Of a stretch of DNA of 64,000 nucleotides, positions 11,851-60,433 are shown piece after piece. The stretch is from Sminthopsis crassicaudata (lineage: Eukaryota). Made by a program: the position numbers and the translations under genes. The stretch covers positions 454,301,644 through 454,365,643 of the forward strand of contig NC_133619.1 of the NCBI RefSeq assembly GCF_048593235.1. The letters run 5' to 3'. The notes under the pieces are model-generated. The model had not been told where the DNA came from. It did no database searches and saw only the letters and a program-made list of their open reading frames with translations. The first letter of the stretch is position 1. The number at the start of each line of letters is the position of its first letter.

Positions 11851-13329
11851 ATGTTATTGGCTAACTCATACATAGTAGGTTCTTGGTAAATATTTGTAGA
11901 ATGAATTAATGAAATCAAATGAAAATTTTAATTTCCTCTAATGTTGATACATTTTCTGTATGATAAAAGTCTTTGTCAATGACAAAGCAGATAACCAACA
12001 ATGAAAAAGCTTCTATGATTTCTGAAAATGTGTCTTGGGGTCACTAATTGGCATGTGCTTTAATTTAATTTAATTTTTAACTTAATTTTTAAATGTTTGT
12101 TAAAATATCACCTAAAATGAATGCTCTTCTCTCTAGATGGTAAAAATTAAAGATATAATGAACAACAAAGTCATTTGGAATATAATATAAATAAAAAAGG
12201 CTAAAATAAAAAATAACGCCTTTCTGCAGTACCCATAGTGTTTCATCTTATATCCATGTATAGTAATCTAATTAAATGTTGTCAGGGGTTAAAATAGTGT
12301 TGCATGACAGCAAATTCAGCAGGAGTGCTTTGAGGTCACAGTCAGCATGGTTATAACTGACTTTCATCCTATTCAACTGACAATGCTGCCATATTTTCTG
12401 AAACTGGCATATGCAGTTTTGCTGTCATCAATCATGGAATCTCTGCCTAGATCAGACATACTTTTCCTTGCAACAGCTGAGACAAGCAACATAATTCACA
12501 AAACTGCATTGTTTCCTCAAGGTTCTACCTCTGTCATCTCTGTCACCTTTGCCTCTTCCCTATTATATCCCTGCTTTCCCCCTACCAAATTAACTTATGA
12601 GATCTTCACTTTCTTTTTCTCCCACCTCTTGCATTGTCCTATTCCACTAGTTAATCCATTTTCCATATCAGCTTTCTTTACTATTTTCCCCTCTTCTACA
12701 GCTAATAGTGCTCTATGTCTAGTAATAAATATCATTATTTCTGAATATAGATTCAACTTCTCATATTTGTGGGTTTCTCATTTTTGCAGAACAACAGAGA
12801 TTCATAAAAGATTTCCTACAATTGCTTAATATACTCTTTATAAAATTTTTCATTTTTGATTTGATTTTTCAACGAATAAACATTTTCCTCTTTCTCCAGA
12901 GCCCTATTCTCAGTTTAAAAGAAAAAGAAAATGCTTGTAACAAATATGTTTAATCAAGAAAAGCAAACTTACACATTATTCATGTCAAAAAATGTTCATA
13001 CACATTTAGAGCACATTTTTCAAGGTATGACTTTTCTCAGCAATAGATTTGGTTCTATGATAGAAGTGAGCTGTAACCATTCAAGTAAGATAAGCTCCAG
13101 TATGGAACACAGCAGGAGGGCAGAATGGAAAAGCCTGGGAATAAAGTTATCATGTTTGGAAGAGGAAATTTAACAAAAGTTAAATTTTTGGTAACATTAT
13201 GAGAAATATAAGTAGGTAAGTCCAAGGTTGGGACTGAAAGAAAATGAAAATTTACTTTTACTCATAGCACCTATTCATCAAAATTTTGATTCCTATATCT
13301 CTAACAATAGTTTATCTTCATTACATTTC

Positions 13330-16615: not shown

Positions 16616-17384
16616 TCTAATCATCATTTATCTATTTAGGGAATGCCTTTCACATTTGCTTTGTAAGCTACCATGTCGTAATTGTGGACTTATGCAGTCC
16701 ACTAAAATTCCCAGATTTTTTTTCCAATAAATTGTTCTTTAATCATGTACCTCCATTTTATACTTTTGCTGACTTTTTTTTTAAACTCAAGGATAAAATC
16801 TTCTGTTTTCTCTGTTAAATATTATTTGACTTAACCCAAATTGCAAACCTGTTGAGATTCTTTTGCACATTATTTAATTTGAATCATTTCTTTTAGCTCT
16901 CCCACATCTTTTGAAACTGATAAAAGAAACATATACACCTTATTTAAGTCATTGATAAAAACGTGAAAGTCCCATTAATGACCATTCTTCAGTTCCAATC
17001 ATTAAAAGAGTTTTAAATTCAGATAACTTGACTAGCACAAAACTTCTACTTCCCTCCACAAAAACAGCATGACAAACTTTGTCAGATGCTTTACTAAAAT
17101 CTCCATGAACTCAAGTGACAACATTCCCCCAATTTGCCAATTTAATAATCTTATCAGAACAGGAAATGAGGTCAGTCCAGCATAAGTTGTTTTTGATGAA
17201 GCTATACTAGGCTTTTGAGGGTTTTTTTTCCTTTTCTTTTTCTTCTTTTTTTGGGTGGATGATTACTACTTTTTTTCTAAATGTTCACTAACTAATTACA
17301 TCTTTAATAATACATTCTAGAATTTTGACAGGAATAGAATTTAAGCTTACTGACTTATAGTTTATAGATTTCATTCTCTTCCTT

Positions 17385-17386
<2 letters not shown>

Positions 17387-17442
<56 letters not shown>
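17387..17442 (+). repeat. (AC)28 microsatellite
   Basis: Read directly. Confidence 0.95.
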
Positions 17443-17444
<2 letters not shown>

Positions 17445-18064
17445 CCCTTTCCTAGTTTTATAATAGCTCTTCTATTTTTCCCCCCATAGACTACACTTAT
17501 ATCTTGAAATGTGATGGGTATTGACCCAGTAATTTGATGTGCTCATTTTTGTCTTCCTAAGTTATCTTCAGTTTCAACTTCCTAGGAGTCACTTTTTCCC
17601 AGGTCTTTTCCAATATAAATATATTTCTTCTTGGTAAAGAATGTAAAAGCAAAATAAGAGTTGGATAGTTCCCTTTGTCTTTTGTCTGGTCATTTTTTAA
17701 TCCTCCTTCCAACTATCCAGGAGCAGCCATATTCCTTTTTTTTTATCAGATTATCTACTCAAAATGCTCAATTCATATAGTATAAGAATATTTTAAATAC
17801 TTAAGGAAAATATTCTGAAAGGAATGTGATCTAGAGCTAAAGTAGGGGCAAGTAGGGGAAGGTTAATATTCTAAAACAGCAGGTTATTTGTGGTACAAAT
17901 TCTATAAAAAGTTAGAGGTGTCAACAATGTAGCCTGCAAACTAAGCCACATATGTATGTAATTTCTTTACTCACAATAAAGTGAGAAAAAGGGTAAAAAT
18001 CACAATATATTGAAATACTACCACACAAACACTCAGACTACCCCAAATCAAACTATGGACAAGT

Positions 18065-24372: not shown

Positions 24373-24936
24373 TTGGAAGTTCTCAATCCCTTGGGCCAGT
24401 GTGCTCTTAGGAGTCCTTTCAATGACCCAAAAGGTAAACAACTTTCATAGTAATACTATTTATTNNNNNNNNNNNNNNNNNNNNNNNNNNNNNNNNNNNN
24501 NNNNNNNNNNNNNNNNNNNNNNNNNNNNNNNNNNNNNNNNNNNNNNNNNNNNNNNNNNNNNNNNNNNNNNNNNNNNNNNNNNNNNNNNNNNNNNNNNNAA
24601 CCAGACAGTTAAGAGATTTGCAAAAATACGTAAAACACTGTCACTTCTCACTAAATGTTTTTGGTTTTGTTTTGGAAAATACAGTTATTTTTCATTCATT
24701 AAAATGTTATTTATGTTAACATGTAACAGATTTAATACTATTGTTTTAAATGAATTAAAATACTTATCCCTTAATTTCTAATATCTAAATATTGATATAT
24801 ATGTAATATAGATATAATCTCATATAAACAAGGTTCTTTGATGTCTCTTCAAAAAAATTTCAAGAGTATAAGGGAGATCTCAATAATTTTAAAGAGTGCA
24901 TAGGACTGTTGATCCTCAAAAGCTTGAGAAACCTTT
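24373..24936 (+). mobile_element. hAT Charlie1-like DNA transposon relic spanning an assembly gap
   Basis: 5' end gttctcaa...tttcatagtaatacta. 3' end aaccagacagttaagagatttgcaaaaat...gttttggaaaatacagttatttttcat...cataaacaaggttctttg...aaaagcttgagaaacc. Both match my recall of Charlie1 ends. Confidence 0.7.
24465..24598. other. Assembly gap (134 N)
   Basis: Run of N. Confidence 1.
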
Positions 24937-26984: not shown

Positions 26985-28380
26985 CTGTGGCTCCCTGTTA
27001 CCTCTAGGATAAAATATAAATTGATGTTTTAGCACTTCACATTATGGTTCTAATCTATATTTATAAACTGATTTCACATTACTGTTTTTCACATACATTA
27101 TATTCCAGCAAAACTAGTCTACTTACAATTCTCTGTGCACAATTCATACTCATATATAGTATTCTGTCTCCCATTTTTCTATCTTAGTATTTGTTAAGAA
27201 TGTTGATCTCTCTACTACCACACACCTCTCAGATTGGCTAAGATGACAAAAAAAGATAATGACAAGTGTTGGAGGGGATATGGGAAAACTGGGACACTAG
27301 TACATTGTTGGCAGAGATGTGAACTGATCCAACCATTCTGGAGAGCAATTTGGAACTATGCCCAAAGGCTATCAAACTGTGCATACTCTTTGATTCAGTA
27401 GTTTCTCAAAGAGATAATAAAAAAGAGGAAAGGATCTAGGTGTACAAAAAAAATGTTTGCAGCAGCCCTTTTTGTATTGGCAAGAAACTAGAAGCTGAGT
27501 GGATGCCCTTCAGTTGGAGAATGGCTGAATAAATTATGGTACATGAATGTTATGGAATATTATTGTTTGGTAAGAAACAACCAGCAGGATGATTTCAGAA
27601 AGGCCTGAAGAGACTTCCATGAACTGATGCTAAATGAAGTGAGAAGAACCAGGAAAATGTTGTGCACAGCAACAGCAAGATTATGTAATGATCAATTCTG
27701 AAGGATGTGGCTCTTTTCAACTATGAGGTGATTCAAATCAGTTCCAATGGTCTTGTGATAGAGAGAGCCATTTGTACCCAGAGAGAGAACTTTGGTGACT
27801 AAGTGTGGATCACAACATTATATTTTCACTTTTTTGTTGTTGTTTGCTTGCATTTTATTTTCTTTTTCATTTTCCCCCTTTTTGATTTGATTTTTCTTGT
27901 GCAGCATGATATTTGTGGAAATATGTATCGAAGAATTGAAATTATTTAACATATATTGGATTACTTTCTGTCTAGGGGAGGGAATGGGATGAAGAGAGGG
28001 AAAAACTTTGAAACACAAGATTTTCCAAGGGTAAATGTTGAAAATTATCCATGCATATGTTTTGAAAATAAAAAAGGTTTAATAAAAAAAAATAGTTGAC
28101 CTCACTTTTGAATTTAAAATCTCTATCTTCCTTCAGGATTTAGATCAAATGCCATTTCCAACATAAGTTATTTCTTAATCCCCCTAGTCTTAGTATTCTC
28201 CTTATCCTGAATCTAAGCAATACATAGTTTATATTTGTTTATATTCTCCCCAGTAGAATATGTTTATAAGTTTCTTAACCGTAGGTACTCTTTAAAAAAA
28301 TCTGAATATTCTTGGTTCCTAACAAAATGTCTGGCACTTATAGACATTTAATAAATAGAACTGTATCTAACTGCATTGAG
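26985..28380 (+). mobile_element. L2 3' fragment split by an L1 (27213-28092)
   Basis: ggctccctgttacctctaggataaaatataaa... before the L1; ...gatcaaatgccatttcc...gtctggcacttatagacatttaataaa after it. Confidence 0.7.
27213..28092 (+). mobile_element. 5'-truncated marsupial L1 (ORF2 C-terminus, 3' UTR, A tail)
   Basis: acacacctctcagattggctaagatgac...ccaaccattctggagagcaatttggaactatgccc...aataaaaaaaaa. Degenerate TSD aagaatgttgatctc / aaaaatagttgacctc. Confidence 0.9.
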
Positions 28381-29700: not shown

Positions 29701-30283
29701 AAGGCATATCTTACAGATATTGCAGATTTAGTGATTTAGTTCTAGACCATTGGAAAGTGAATATCACAATAAAGTGAATCACAAGAATTTTTGGGTTTTC
29801 CAGTGCATATAATAGATATGTTTATACTATACTGCAATGTATTAAGTGTGAAATAGTAGTGTCTTTTAAAATGTACATACTTTATTTAAAAATATATTAC
29901 TGCTAAAAAAAAATACTAAACATCACCTGAGTAAATCCTAATCTTTTTTGCTGGTGGAGGGTCTTGCCTCAGTGTTGATCAGGGTGGTGGTTGCTGAAGG
30001 CTGCTTCTTCAANNNNNNNNNNNNNNNNNNNNNNNNNNNNNNNNNNNNNNNNNNNNNNNNNNNNNNNNNNNNNNNNNNNNNNNNNNNNNNNNNNNNNNNN
30101 NNNNNNNNNNNNNNNNNNNNNNNNNNNNNNNNNNNNNNNNNNNNNNTCCCCCCAGTCCAAGGATCGGGATAAATTGGCAAGTGGAGCAGTCAAAAAACAC
30201 ATAACATTTATCGATTAAGTTTACCATCTTATATAGCCTTGTTCATGGCACCCCAAAACAATTACAATAGTAACATCAAAGAT
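29701..30283 (+). mobile_element. Tigger3/Golem-like Tc1-mariner relic (left TIR present, 3' truncated, spans a gap)
   Basis: TA followed by aaggcatatct.acagatattgcag (TIR). Internal blocks aatcttttttgctggtggagggtcttgcctc, acatttatcgattaagtt and ggcaccccaaaacaattacaatagtaacatcaaagat match my recall of Tigger3. Confidence 0.8.
30013..30146. other. Assembly gap (134 N)
   Basis: Run of N. Confidence 1.
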
Positions 30284-38039: not shown

Positions 38040-40319
38040 ACTGATTTCTATTAATTATCCTTTTTCCTCAAGGAGATTTAAGTACAAGGAAAAGAAAACT
38101 GTCGTCTTTAAAAAGATAATGTAACATCTGATGTATTGGTTGTTTTGCTGAACTGCTTTTTTCTTTCTTTTTTATATTCTATGCTACAGGAAATAGCTTA
38201 TTATTGAATATTTTTGAAAATTTAATATGATATAAAAACAAAAAATGCCAAATGTTTTAAAGTTTAAGTATGTACAATACACACTCTAAGATCTCTAGTT
38301 TAAAGACACAAAGTCTATGAAAGAAAAGAAACATACATGTCAAGAATTCCTGAGGTGTAATCCCATTCCTCTGCTAACAGAATCTACCATATAATAAAGA
38401 AGCTATTTTAGAATTATGAAGAGATGAGGATAAGTGTGAAATTATGCTGTCTTGCTACACATATAACTGTTGATACTAATATAATGGAAATTCCTGAAAC
38501 AATACATAATACAACCAACTAAGAGGAAAGAATTCAACGAATATGAAATGTTTTTATATCACAGTAGCAAAGCTTTTTGCACACATATAGTAGATGAAAG
38601 TTATCTATGGCACTGGCTAGACACAATTTTGAAATGACTAATTTACTTTTATGAGGCAGAAATCAACCGATAGTTTAACATTGTGGTGATGCTCAGTAAT
38701 ATTGATCTCAAAATACACATCCAGACATGTTAAAACATGAGCCAAATTCTGCTCTTCGATTCACACATACAGTTTTCATTGGAATTAATAGGATATGCAT
38801 ATCATGAGGATGAATTTGGGCTTTGACATGAAGCTTTGCAGGAGCCTTCCACCCTAGCTGGAAATAAGAGTGTGAAAGGGATTAATTTAACCTGAAGTTT
38901 TCTACTTCGCAGAATCAAAATATTTCCTATGCATTTCAGCTGAATAATTTAAACTTGTAAAAACAAGTTAGAAGGAGGTTTTTGTTTTGTTTTAATTTTA
39001 GCTTCTTTATAGTCAACTCTATCTCAGTTCCTAACAACACAAATCCTTCTGCCTGAATTTTTCAAATGTAACAGTAGGCAAAAACTAGATTTCTAAAGAG
39101 AGAGGCATTCTAAAGACACACATAATGCTACCAATACCTCTAGTAGTTACAGTGATTTCTGAGCTGTTGATCTTTATGGTTGATCAGCTAATCCAGTCTG
39201 ACCACAATAATGATCATCACCATCATCATCATCTCAAAGTCAAGGAAAAATTCTTGTACCACAGAAGAGTGGATTGAAAATCTATTGAGTTTTTAGAATC
39301 ACTTCACCAATACCCAAACAAGGTCAGACTCTTGCTTCAGTGTCTCAGCAATTCTGCCAATGGCAACAACATAATTCTATCAAATTCTATTTTTTTTGGA
39401 AAGTCAGGGATAAGAAAAATGTAAAACAGGGATTTAGATAGGAGCTTCATTTCACTGTCTCTTCCTATCTTGGCAGAATTCACCTCCTTTAAAAGAAAAA
39501 TCACGAAAATAGGAAATAGACCTTCAAAATAAGCCAAAGGCACATGAATATGTGAAGTAATTAGAAAGGGATCTCAAAAATGCTATAACATCAAATTCAA
39601 CAGACACTTCAATTTTACCAGTGTTTTAAAATGACAGATTTATGGTGTGTTTTCTTTTAATGAAAGTCATTCATGGTATCCATAATGAAAACAGGAGACA
39701 GAAACAAGCAGACTTTTTTTTGCAGACAGTTTATTTTGCAGACAATATCTTTATGGTCACATAAGTGACTGAGGTTTAGAGAATATAAGATCCCACTGTG
39801 TTTATTGTTTGCTTTTTTTAGGAAAGCATTTGATGTGGTCAAACAAAATGTAGTCCTGAAAACTCTCCTCAGACAAGGTGTCTCCAACTCATACACTACA
39901 ATCATTTAAGACCCTATGACAGATACCACTACAAAAATAGTTTTTATTTAATGACCTCCTGAGTACTGACATAAAGTATGTTAAAAATAGTACTACATGT
40001 TCTAAAGTTTTTTTCAATGTCATGAAATATGTACCAAATAAAGAAAAAAATATTCTCTTTTGATGGAGATATCCTCTAAATGTTTCTATTTATAAATGAT
40101 ACAGTAATTATATCGAGCCCCAGAATACTTAAGAGCCTTCTCAATGAAATTCACAGAAATACCAAAAAACAAAACAAAACAAAACAAAACCCAACCCAGA
40201 TTTATCAAGCTATGCTATAAAAACAAAGTGGATGAAAAAAGCACAGTAGTTTGGTTAAGTATAATATGAAAAAGAATGTGTAGACTGTTGAATTAGACAT
40301 TTAAACATAAAGGTAAATT

Positions 40320-40323
<4 letters not shown>

Positions 40324-40375
<52 letters not shown>

Positions 40376-40420
40376 TGTAGTGTATATATGTATATATACA
40401 CATATGAATATATACATGTG
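40324..40420 (+). repeat. (TA)n microsatellite with degenerate TA/TG tail
   Basis: About 23 pure TA units (40324-40369), then mixed units. Confidence 0.95.
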
Positions 40421-40589
40421 TGTGAGATGTGGCAAACACTTCTAATGATTTAGAATTTAGTGAAAATAGGAGGAAAAAGTTGAAGTGAATTACACTTGAA
40501 AAATAGAGTGGTAATTGCAATTGTTCTCAAACTGCCCATTGCCATAAAAACTAGACACTTTAACACCAATGACTTTGCACTGAAACTAG

Positions 40590-40690
40590 CTTACTGTAAA
40601 TCACAGATTACTATAATCTGAGGTTTAAATTACAAATTACCTATTTGTAATTTAAACCTCAGATTATAGTAATTTGTGATTTACAGTAAG
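40590..40690. repeat. Inverted repeat: 48-bp arms, 5-nt loop, 1 mismatch
   Basis: Left arm 40590-40637, loop TACCT at 40638-40642, right arm 40643-40690. The only mismatch is G40606 opposite T40674. Confidence 0.97.
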
Positions 40691-40803
40691 AAGGTAATGG
40701 AAAAATTCATGTAAGAAATAAATAATCTACCCTTATGTTACAAGCAAGCAGTATGGTATAATATGACCCAAATACTAAATTCTGATACCAGAAATACAAA
40801 ATG

Positions 40804-40905
40804 GGGGGAGGGGGAGAGAGAGAGAGAGAGCGAGAAGGAAGGAGGGAGGGAGACAGGGAGGCAGGAAGAGAGGGAGGGAAGGAAGGAGGGAGGGAAAGAG
40901 GAAGA
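40804..40905 (+). repeat. Polypurine (GA/GGAA/GGGA) tract
   Basis: ggggagggggagagagagag...ggaaggagggagggaaagaggaag. Confidence 0.9.
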
Positions 40906-41867: not shown

Positions 41868-42248
41868 TTTTATATTTTAGAATAGCTTTTCATTTTCAAA
41901 ATACATGCAAAGGTAATTTTCAGCATTCATTCTTGCAAAACTTTGTGTTCCAAATTTTTTCCCTTTTTTTTTTCCCTTACTGGCCTCCCTTGGACACCAA
42001 GTAATCCAGTATAGGTTAAACATGTGCATTTCTTCTAAACATATTTCCATTGTGCCATTATCATGCTGAATAAAAAAAATCAGATCAAAAAAGGAAAATA
42101 GTTTGAAAGAAAAAAAAAAAACAAGCGAATAACAAAAAAGATGAAAATTACTATGTTGTGATCTATATTCAGTGCTCATAATCCTTTTTCTGGATGCCTA
42201 TCATTCTCTCCATCCCAAATCTATTGAGACTGAATGAATCACCTCATC
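41868..42248 (-). mobile_element. Marsupial L1 3' UTR fragment
   Basis: aatagcttttcattttcaaaatacatgcaaagg...ttcttgcaaaactttgtgttccaaatttttt. Confidence 0.85.
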
Positions 42249-43131: not shown

Positions 43132-43357
43132 NNNNNNNNNNNNNNNNNNNNNNNNNNNNNNNNNNNNNNNNNNNNNNNNNNNNNNNNNNNNNNNNNNNNN
43201 NNNNNNNNNNNNNNNNNNNNNNNNNNNNNNNNNNNNNNNNNNNNNNNNNNNNNNNNNNNNNNNNNNNNNNNNNNNNNNNNNNNNNNNNNNNNNNNNNNNN
43301 NNNNNNNNNNNNNNNNNNNNNNNNNNNNNNNNNNNNNNNNNNNNNNNNNNNNNNNNN
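43132..43357. other. Assembly gap (226 N)
   Basis: Run of N. Confidence 1.
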
Positions 43358-59179: not shown

Positions 59180-59325
59180 GGGCAGCTAGGTAGTGCAGTG
59201 GAGAGAGCACCAACCCAGAAGTGAGGAGGATCTGAGTTCAAATTTGATCTCAGAAATTTAACACTTCCTAACTGTGTGATCCTGGGCAAGTAACTTAACT
59301 CCCCCCCCCAAAAAAAAGAAAAAAA
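59180..59325 (+). mobile_element. WSINE1-type SINE inside ORF1
   Basis: gggcagctaggtagtgcagtgg...gagttcaaatttgatctcag...cttaactccccccccc plus A tail; flanked by agaagag on both sides. Confidence 0.9.
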
Positions 59326-60433
59326 CTAGAAGAGAATATGAAACATCTTATTAGAAAAACAACTGATCTGAAGAACAGATCAAGGAGGCATAATATGGGA
59401 ATAGTCAGACTACCTGAAATTATGATAAAAAAGAATTTTGATATAGTATTAGAAAAAATTATCAAGAAAATTGATCTCCTAAGACAAGAAGACAAAGCAA
59501 AAACAGAAAAAAATCCACCCATCACAACCTGAAAGAGATCCCAAGAGGAAAACTTACAGGAATGTAATAGCTAAGTTTCAAAGTCCCAGATTAAGGAGAA
59601 AATATTGAAAGCAATAGGAAAAAAAACCAAACAATTTAAATATCATGGATTTCAAAAGTCCTAGCTACTATTGCATTGATGAATGGTAGATCTTGGAATA
59701 CTATATTTTCATAGAGCAATAGAGATGACGTTACAATCAAGGGTAACACACCTAGTGAAGTTAAATCTAATCCTGAATGATAAAAATAGACATTTAATTA
59801 ACTTAAAGACTTTAAGATATTTGTAACAAAAATAGCAGAACTTAAAGAAAATTTCAACACATTCACATCCAGGAGAAATATAAAGTAAACATTTAAAGAT
59901 CAATTATAAGGGACTCAATATGGTCAAATTGTTTACTAAGAAGTATGTAATATATAAGTAATAATCTCTTCATGGCAAAATGAATATATATATATACATA
60001 TATATATTCATATATAACAAAAATTCATTCACAAATATCCAACCCTACACAAATATTCCTATTGTCACCTATTGAAATCATAGCCATCCTTTACAATTTG
60101 GGCCATAATTTCTCTATTCTTGATTGACCTTAGAACTTGTATAATACTTTGTTTATATCTTTGTTATACACCTGTGATATTCTATTTTATATGGAGAACT
60201 ATATATATATATAATTATATAAAATATATAAATATATAAAAAATAATATATGACAATATTATCAATTCGCTTATGACAGTCATTTTTATTTTGGTAGTTT
60301 GGAGGAAAGGCTTGGACTGAGCTGAGTACATTGGGACGATTTTCTTCTCTCTCCTCTTGTTTTCTCAGTCTCTGTCTCTCCCTACCTACACATACACACA
60401 TTATATATAAATATGTTATGTATTTAGCTATAC

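Follow-up and report, generated by a model that had tools for sequence, protein, structure and literature searches.

A near-perfect 101-nt hairpin in old AT-rich DNA of the fat-tailed dunnart and its probable origin in a recent template-switch duplication

Within the window, i.e., the whole 64,000-nt stretch of Sminthopsis crassicaudata DNA analyzed here, two arms of 48 nt form a near-perfect hairpin, and we consider it probable that this structure arose by a recent germline template-switch duplication during replication (a fold-back or strand-switch event) within old non-coding DNA, most likely a neutral one. As far as the assembly goes, the hairpin itself is confirmed, and so are its uniqueness within the window and its predicted stability. 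From its sequence and that of its surroundings we infer by what mechanism the event took place, that the right arm was copied from the left one, and that the event is young and neutral.

Structure of the hairpin and its place in the assembly

The repeat search returned an inverted repeat with arms at 40590-40637 and 40643-40690, 48 nt each, 98% complementary and separated by 5 nt, so the total hairpin covers 101 bases (40590-40690), and 47 of the 48 arm positions form Watson-Crick pairs. On the plus strand, the left arm (25% G+C), which we take as the ancestral copy, continues an open stretch of 45 codons at 40484-40618. It is followed by the non-palindromic spacer TACCT (40638-40642) and then by the right arm, which matches the left one as its reverse complement and is presumed to be the inserted fold-back copy. 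If the reading frame of the 45 codons is carried on, the right arm amounts to 16 whole codons, including two stops. The sole position at which the arms fail to pair by Watson-Crick rules is G40606/T40674, where the plus strand carries a T at 40674 in place of the expected C. Sequence reading, repeat search, and folding thus confirmed, for the assembly, the near-perfect 101-nt hairpin that the initial annotation had placed here.

The structure is far beyond what the composition of this DNA would generate. With the base composition of the window (33% G+C), the probability of at least 47 pairs out of 48 was 3.4e-25, and about 7e-19 such hairpins would be expected by chance in the window for spacers of 0 to 30; moreover, block shuffles of the window never gave perfect arms longer than 14 nt. 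No other complex inverted repeat in the 64-kb window reached this size, as all the other long inverted repeats sit within (TA)n arrays. Searched against the 64-kb window, neither the arms nor the flanks (40430-40800) had a second copy.

Folding was then predicted for both strands. The plus-strand RNA gave a minimum energy of -72.7 kcal/mol (z = -19.3), none of 200 shuffled sequences folded as well, and all 48 positions were paired, the G.U pair included. For the minus-strand RNA, the energy was -65.0 kcal/mol (z = -16.0), and the mismatch site appeared as a C.A 1x1 internal loop, while the single-stranded DNA folded at -46.3 kcal/mol (z = -18.0). The minimum-energy stem was composed of 48 perfect pairs plus three more past a small internal loop, closed by the 5-nt loop, and the hairpin persisted when folded in a context of 301 nt. 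The mismatch had earlier been read as a G.U pair that leaves the stem of a plus-strand RNA fully paired, and the minimum-energy fold bore this out. Were it transcribed, the sequence could fold into a very stable hairpin, and as DNA it could form a cruciform, or a hairpin when single-stranded. Cruciform extrusion, or a hairpin on the lagging strand, would be possible for an AT-rich palindrome with 48-bp arms and a 5-bp spacer; arms of 48 bp are at the low end of the palindrome lengths that cause instability in eukaryotes.

A structure of this kind could also be an artefact of assembly, polishing, or sequencing, the right arm being absent from the DNA of the animal or carried by only a minority of the molecules. 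Library preparation is known to generate fold-back chimeras, and this has to be counted in favor of such an explanation. In addition, noisy long reads, assembled with Flye and then polished by Pilon, underlie at least one fat-tailed dunnart assembly (PMC11091235). We nevertheless regard an artefact as unlikely, because the original orientation seems to be restored after exactly 48 nt, whereas read chimeras usually stay inverted to the end of the read, and because a consensus of many reads should not retain a chimera found in a single one. The spacer and the one arm difference would also be unlike a strand flip in the assembly graph: a flip in a de Bruijn graph yields palindromes with no spacer, and the 5-nt spacer found here, being non-palindromic, argues against it. 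The closest run of N, at 43132, is 2.4 kb away from the hairpin.

Surroundings and host sequence

The region around the hairpin is AT-rich, with 25-38% G+C, and none of the stop-free stretches near it is longer than 84 codons. A (TA)45 microsatellite (40324-40414) precedes the hairpin, and a purine-rich GGGAGGGA-type array (40806-40895, plus strand) is found 116 nt downstream. Pfam analysis of the window's ten longest open stretches gave no family above the cut-off, the Rfam search of the entire 64-kb window gave no family at gathering score, and none of ten neighboring ATG ORFs was present, by exact look-up, in a collection of 15 billion proteins. Pfam and Rfam thus disclosed no gene, exon, or known RNA in the window to suggest that the hairpin belongs to a transcript. 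It is possible that the hairpin lies within a very long intron.

The initial annotation had described the hairpin as lying inside a decayed RTE element, and this is weakly supported. On the positive side, a 46-codon open piece on the plus strand (39769-39906), about 700 bp upstream of the hairpin and on the far side of the (TA)45 microsatellite, contains the RT-like motif FRKAFD. This KAFD-type motif, at 39823, was the only KAFD match when all six frames were scanned. In the ESM Atlas, 5 of the 30 hits of this piece were RVT_1-labelled clusters, with a score of 0.94, which is a weak lead. On the negative side, Pfam analysis of ten stop-free pieces near the hairpin, with E-values up to 10, found neither RVT_1 nor anything else, phmmer searches of PDB with two translated pieces gave no match, the ESM Atlas gave no usable match for the piece leading into the left arm (40484-40618), and tblastn of six translated pieces against the 64-kb window was equally blank.

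When inspected by eye, the orientation of the flanks fits one decayed RT-like frame on both sides of the hairpin, and Pfam, PDB, the ESM Atlas, and tblastn within the window did not confirm the homology. The frames at 40484-40642 and 40691-40711 resemble, again by eye, the part that follows the RT palm in RTE-like elements, with the right arm as an interruption of exactly 16 codons. As none of these searches confirmed this visual resemblance, we gave it limited weight. A decayed reverse-transcriptase-bearing repeat upstream of the hairpin is plausible; that the host is an RTE element, and that the left arm is RTE coding sequence, may be the case and is weakly supported.

Several other features of the window were recorded along the way. 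On the minus strand, open pieces at 17035-17542 contain strings that by eye are similar to LINE reverse transcriptases and lie beside a (CA)n run; they seem to belong to a further decayed retrotransposon, and tblastn showed no similarity between these pieces and those near the hairpin. The same interspersed repeat occurs at 41888-42248 and, in the opposite orientation, at 27723-28074; the two copies share 73% identity over 365 nt. An open stretch of 106 codons on the minus strand (41880-42197) gave a sub-threshold Pfam match to Marek_SORF3, with 19.4 bits against a required 25, and this is probably spurious. At 12308-12826 on the plus strand, there is a stop-free stretch of 173 codons, which is long for 33% G+C, rich in pyrimidine codons, and devoid of any Pfam family; base composition may account for it, or it may be an A-rich LINE read in antisense. 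A 77-codon open piece at 59299-59529 (plus strand) is, by eye, similar to the C-terminal part of the LINE-1 ORF1 protein, and Pfam gave nothing above cut-off for it. The window contains runs of N at 24465-24598 and 30013-30146, both of exactly 134 nt, and at 43132-43357 (226 nt).

Origin of the inverted duplication

In a template-switch mutation, the nascent strand folds back or jumps between strands, is extended for a short distance, and realigns; this yields perfect stems or hairpins in one step, even where there is no pre-existing repeat (PMC10710096). Applied to this locus, the nascent strand would have left its template just past 40642 while old AT-rich non-coding DNA was being copied. 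Next, it would have copied 48 nt backwards, from 40637 to 40590, using as template either the newly synthesized sequence or the opposite strand, before rejoining the original template at 40691. The outcome would be a near-perfect inverted duplication with a 5-nt spacer, in which a single C>T change at 40674, acquired since then, would account for the only difference between the arms.

Several observations support this sequence of events. The copy directly adjoins its source, with 5 nt between them and 47/48 identity, and it has the properties of the inverted copy left by a template switch, i.e., it is in cis, nearby, longer than the minimum of 15 nt, and near-identical to its source. Moreover, the flanks on both sides appear to keep their original orientation, which would need two reciprocal switches, the signature of template switching (PMC10710096). 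That a local inverted duplication, much younger than its surroundings, had taken place was already proposed in the initial annotation, and the data support it: the arms are identical at 47 of 48 positions, versus plus-strand frames that are full of stops, and it is because the surrounding frames are so heavily broken that the duplication appears much younger than the sequence that hosts it.

The arms also provide a rough estimate of age. One difference in 48 sites represents an arm-to-arm divergence of about 2%, and a substitution rate of roughly 1-2e-9 per site per year was assumed. At such a mammalian rate, the divergence points to a duplication that took place no more than a few million years ago; the error of this estimate is very wide.

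The position of the lone difference could be assigned with the aid of an internal symmetry. The left arm contains a perfect 7+3+7 mini-palindrome (40604-40620, plus strand), which is mirrored in the right arm at 40660-40676, and the mirror is imperfect at 40674 only. The four symmetry-related positions are therefore 40606 (G), 40618 (C), 40662 (G), and 40674 (T), and as only the last one is off-pattern, in the simplest history the right arm probably mutated from C to T at this site once copying was complete; this assignment is based on parsimony.

The junctions were less informative. There was no clear microhomology at the switch points. The tetranucleotide GTAA is present at both 40647-40650 and 40686-40689, and one could speculate that this pair reflects a seeded net insertion of 39 nt with a return at GTAA, which it would fit, although it is perhaps a coincidence. 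Equally speculative is a fold-back seed in the form of a small pre-existing hairpin, for which the 8-bp pair 40630-40637/40643-40650 would be a candidate. The mini-palindrome at 40604-40620 had also been suggested as the seed of the switch. Its existence stands, and we rejected it in that role: it sits at neither junction, and its distance from both switch points (40637/40643 and 40590/40690) leaves the suggestion with no direct support.

A palindrome of this size could also come from the insertion, at a TA site, of a short palindromic MITE, a non-autonomous DNA transposon of the Tc1/mariner type, of which human MADE1 is an example. Such MITEs are known with lengths of 80-100 bp, and some have become sources of microRNA families, as MADE1 did for mir-548; this counts in favor of such an insertion. 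The dinucleotide TA is found at 40592-40593 and at 40687-40688, so a 93-nt element at 40594-40686 flanked by TA is formally possible, and the presence of a single copy within 64 kb says little about a 3-Gb genome. However, when these target sites were checked, both TA were inside the paired region, with pairing extending 2 bp further on each side (CT/AG), and an insertion would need a coincidence to explain this; no other direct repeat flanks the arms. The usual termini of Tc1/mariner elements are of the CAGT type, and the ends of the hairpin differ from them. Moreover, the 98% identity between the arms would require very recent activity of DNA transposons, of a kind seldom seen in mammals; mir-548 and other MITE-derived miRNA families were absent even from the weak Rfam matches, and the left arm carries on the open 45-codon stretch from upstream. 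Taken with these observations, a MITE insertion is quite improbable.

It is also very improbable that the hairpin is an old inverted repeat, formed when the retrotransposon was inserted (by an RT template jump or twin priming) and kept near-perfect by gene conversion or selection. Inverted repeats can be expanded by template switching, and those with a short spacer can be homogenised by it (PMC13100816), and the latter process could keep old arms alike. Twin priming, however, inverts the 5' part of an element and does not leave a mirror copy of 48 nt in the middle of it, followed by resumption of the original sequence. Since decay is heavy in the remainder of the element, homogenisation would have had to go on in these 96 nt and nowhere else, and this extra process explains nothing more than a recent template-switch duplication does.

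Small-RNA potential and known systems

A hairpin generated by the same template-switch event could now be a putative source of small RNAs, either a young lineage-specific microRNA or siRNA-like duplexes cut by Dicer. The predicted fold is very stable on either strand, the lone arm difference is a G.U pair on the plus strand, and template-switch hairpins are a documented origin of new miRNAs in primates and mice (PMC10710096). In addition, Rfam covariance models of miRNA families with perfect hairpins matched the sequence with E-values down to 3e-9. When this search by E-value was inspected, MIR7807 had scored 53.1 bits versus a gathering score of 90, MIR5512 46.6 versus 139, mir-4477 40.4 versus 74, with 38.0 on the other strand, and mir-4637 38.3 versus 89. 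The matches were far below the gathering scores and fell on both strands, and because of this we interpret them as a reflection of shape and not of kinship, since models built on perfect hairpins would be expected to score in this way with any perfect hairpin as long as this one; membership of any of these families was rejected. The hairpin thus matched no curated microRNA precursor family in Rfam, in line with the empty result at gathering score for the window as a whole.

The geometry also argues against processing as a microRNA. The preferred shape of a pri-miRNA is a stem of 35 bp with a loop of 10 nt or longer (PMC10710096), whereas the hairpin has 48 perfect pairs plus 3 and a 5-nt loop. 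As shown above, the window yielded neither an exon nor a protein domain or RNA gene that would make it part of a transcript. Regarding the wobble, the G.U pair on the plus strand is a single event at one site and has no statistical weight. The base rate is low even within genes: in genic regions of the human lineage, 53,666 putative template-switch events were reported, 6,054 of them gave hairpins of miRNA size, and only 0.9% of these hairpins are annotated in miRBase (PMC10710096). From such base rates, a putative microRNA or hairpin-RNA function is unlikely, and we would give the small-RNA source the faintest chance among the explanations weighed here. The chance is just as faint for the fuller version of it, a putative microRNA or hairpin-siRNA gene near its birth in a dasyurid, which would have formed a few million years ago at most, would by now be transcribed and cut by Dicer, and would have the G.U pair on the expressed strand as its first fixed change.

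If the neutral template-switch duplication is real in the animal, it would represent a clean single-locus case, in a marsupial, of a replication slip making a perfect hairpin, and perfect hairpins from replication slips are the raw material for occasional new microRNAs. One neutral case of a common and already described process adds little, and the locus would matter only if processing into small RNA, or instability of the palindrome in the population, were seen.

When compared with known systems, the hairpin shares with canonical animal pri-miRNAs a stable stem-loop of about 100 nt with unpaired flanks, and differs from them in its stem of 48-51 bp with no bulges, its 5-nt loop, and the absence of a family match. 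MADE1-type MITEs, the source of mir-548, are similar in being palindromes of about 100 bp with a very short center, TA near both ends, and a perfect hairpin on both strands. Unlike them, the present hairpin has no second copy in the 64-kb window, its pairing passes the TA, its termini are not those of Tc1/mariner elements, and Rfam gave no mir-548 signal.

Closer parallels are found among systems based on strand switching. In quasi-palindrome correction and the expansion of inverted repeats by strand switching (the Ripley model, and PMC13100816 on yeast promoters), a short pre-existing inverted repeat can prime the fold-back, and something similar could have happened here, where the candidate seed would be 40630-40637/40643-40650, with the arms then extended outwards. 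The difference is that the seed at this locus is hypothetical and part of the present arms, so it is inseparable from the copy without the ancestral sequence. Finally, hairpin-creating template-switch mutations have been described by Loytynoja and Goldman and by Monttinen, Frilander and Loytynoja in 2023 (PMC10710096). The present event was deduced from one genome only, and it involves 48 bases, as opposed to the 28 bases of a published example. As in those cases, an inverted copy of the adjacent sequence would have given near-perfect pairing at once, with flanks that seem to have kept their orientation; the 48-nt arms exceed the 15-nt threshold of that study, and the hairpin is likewise found in non-coding, repeat-rich DNA.
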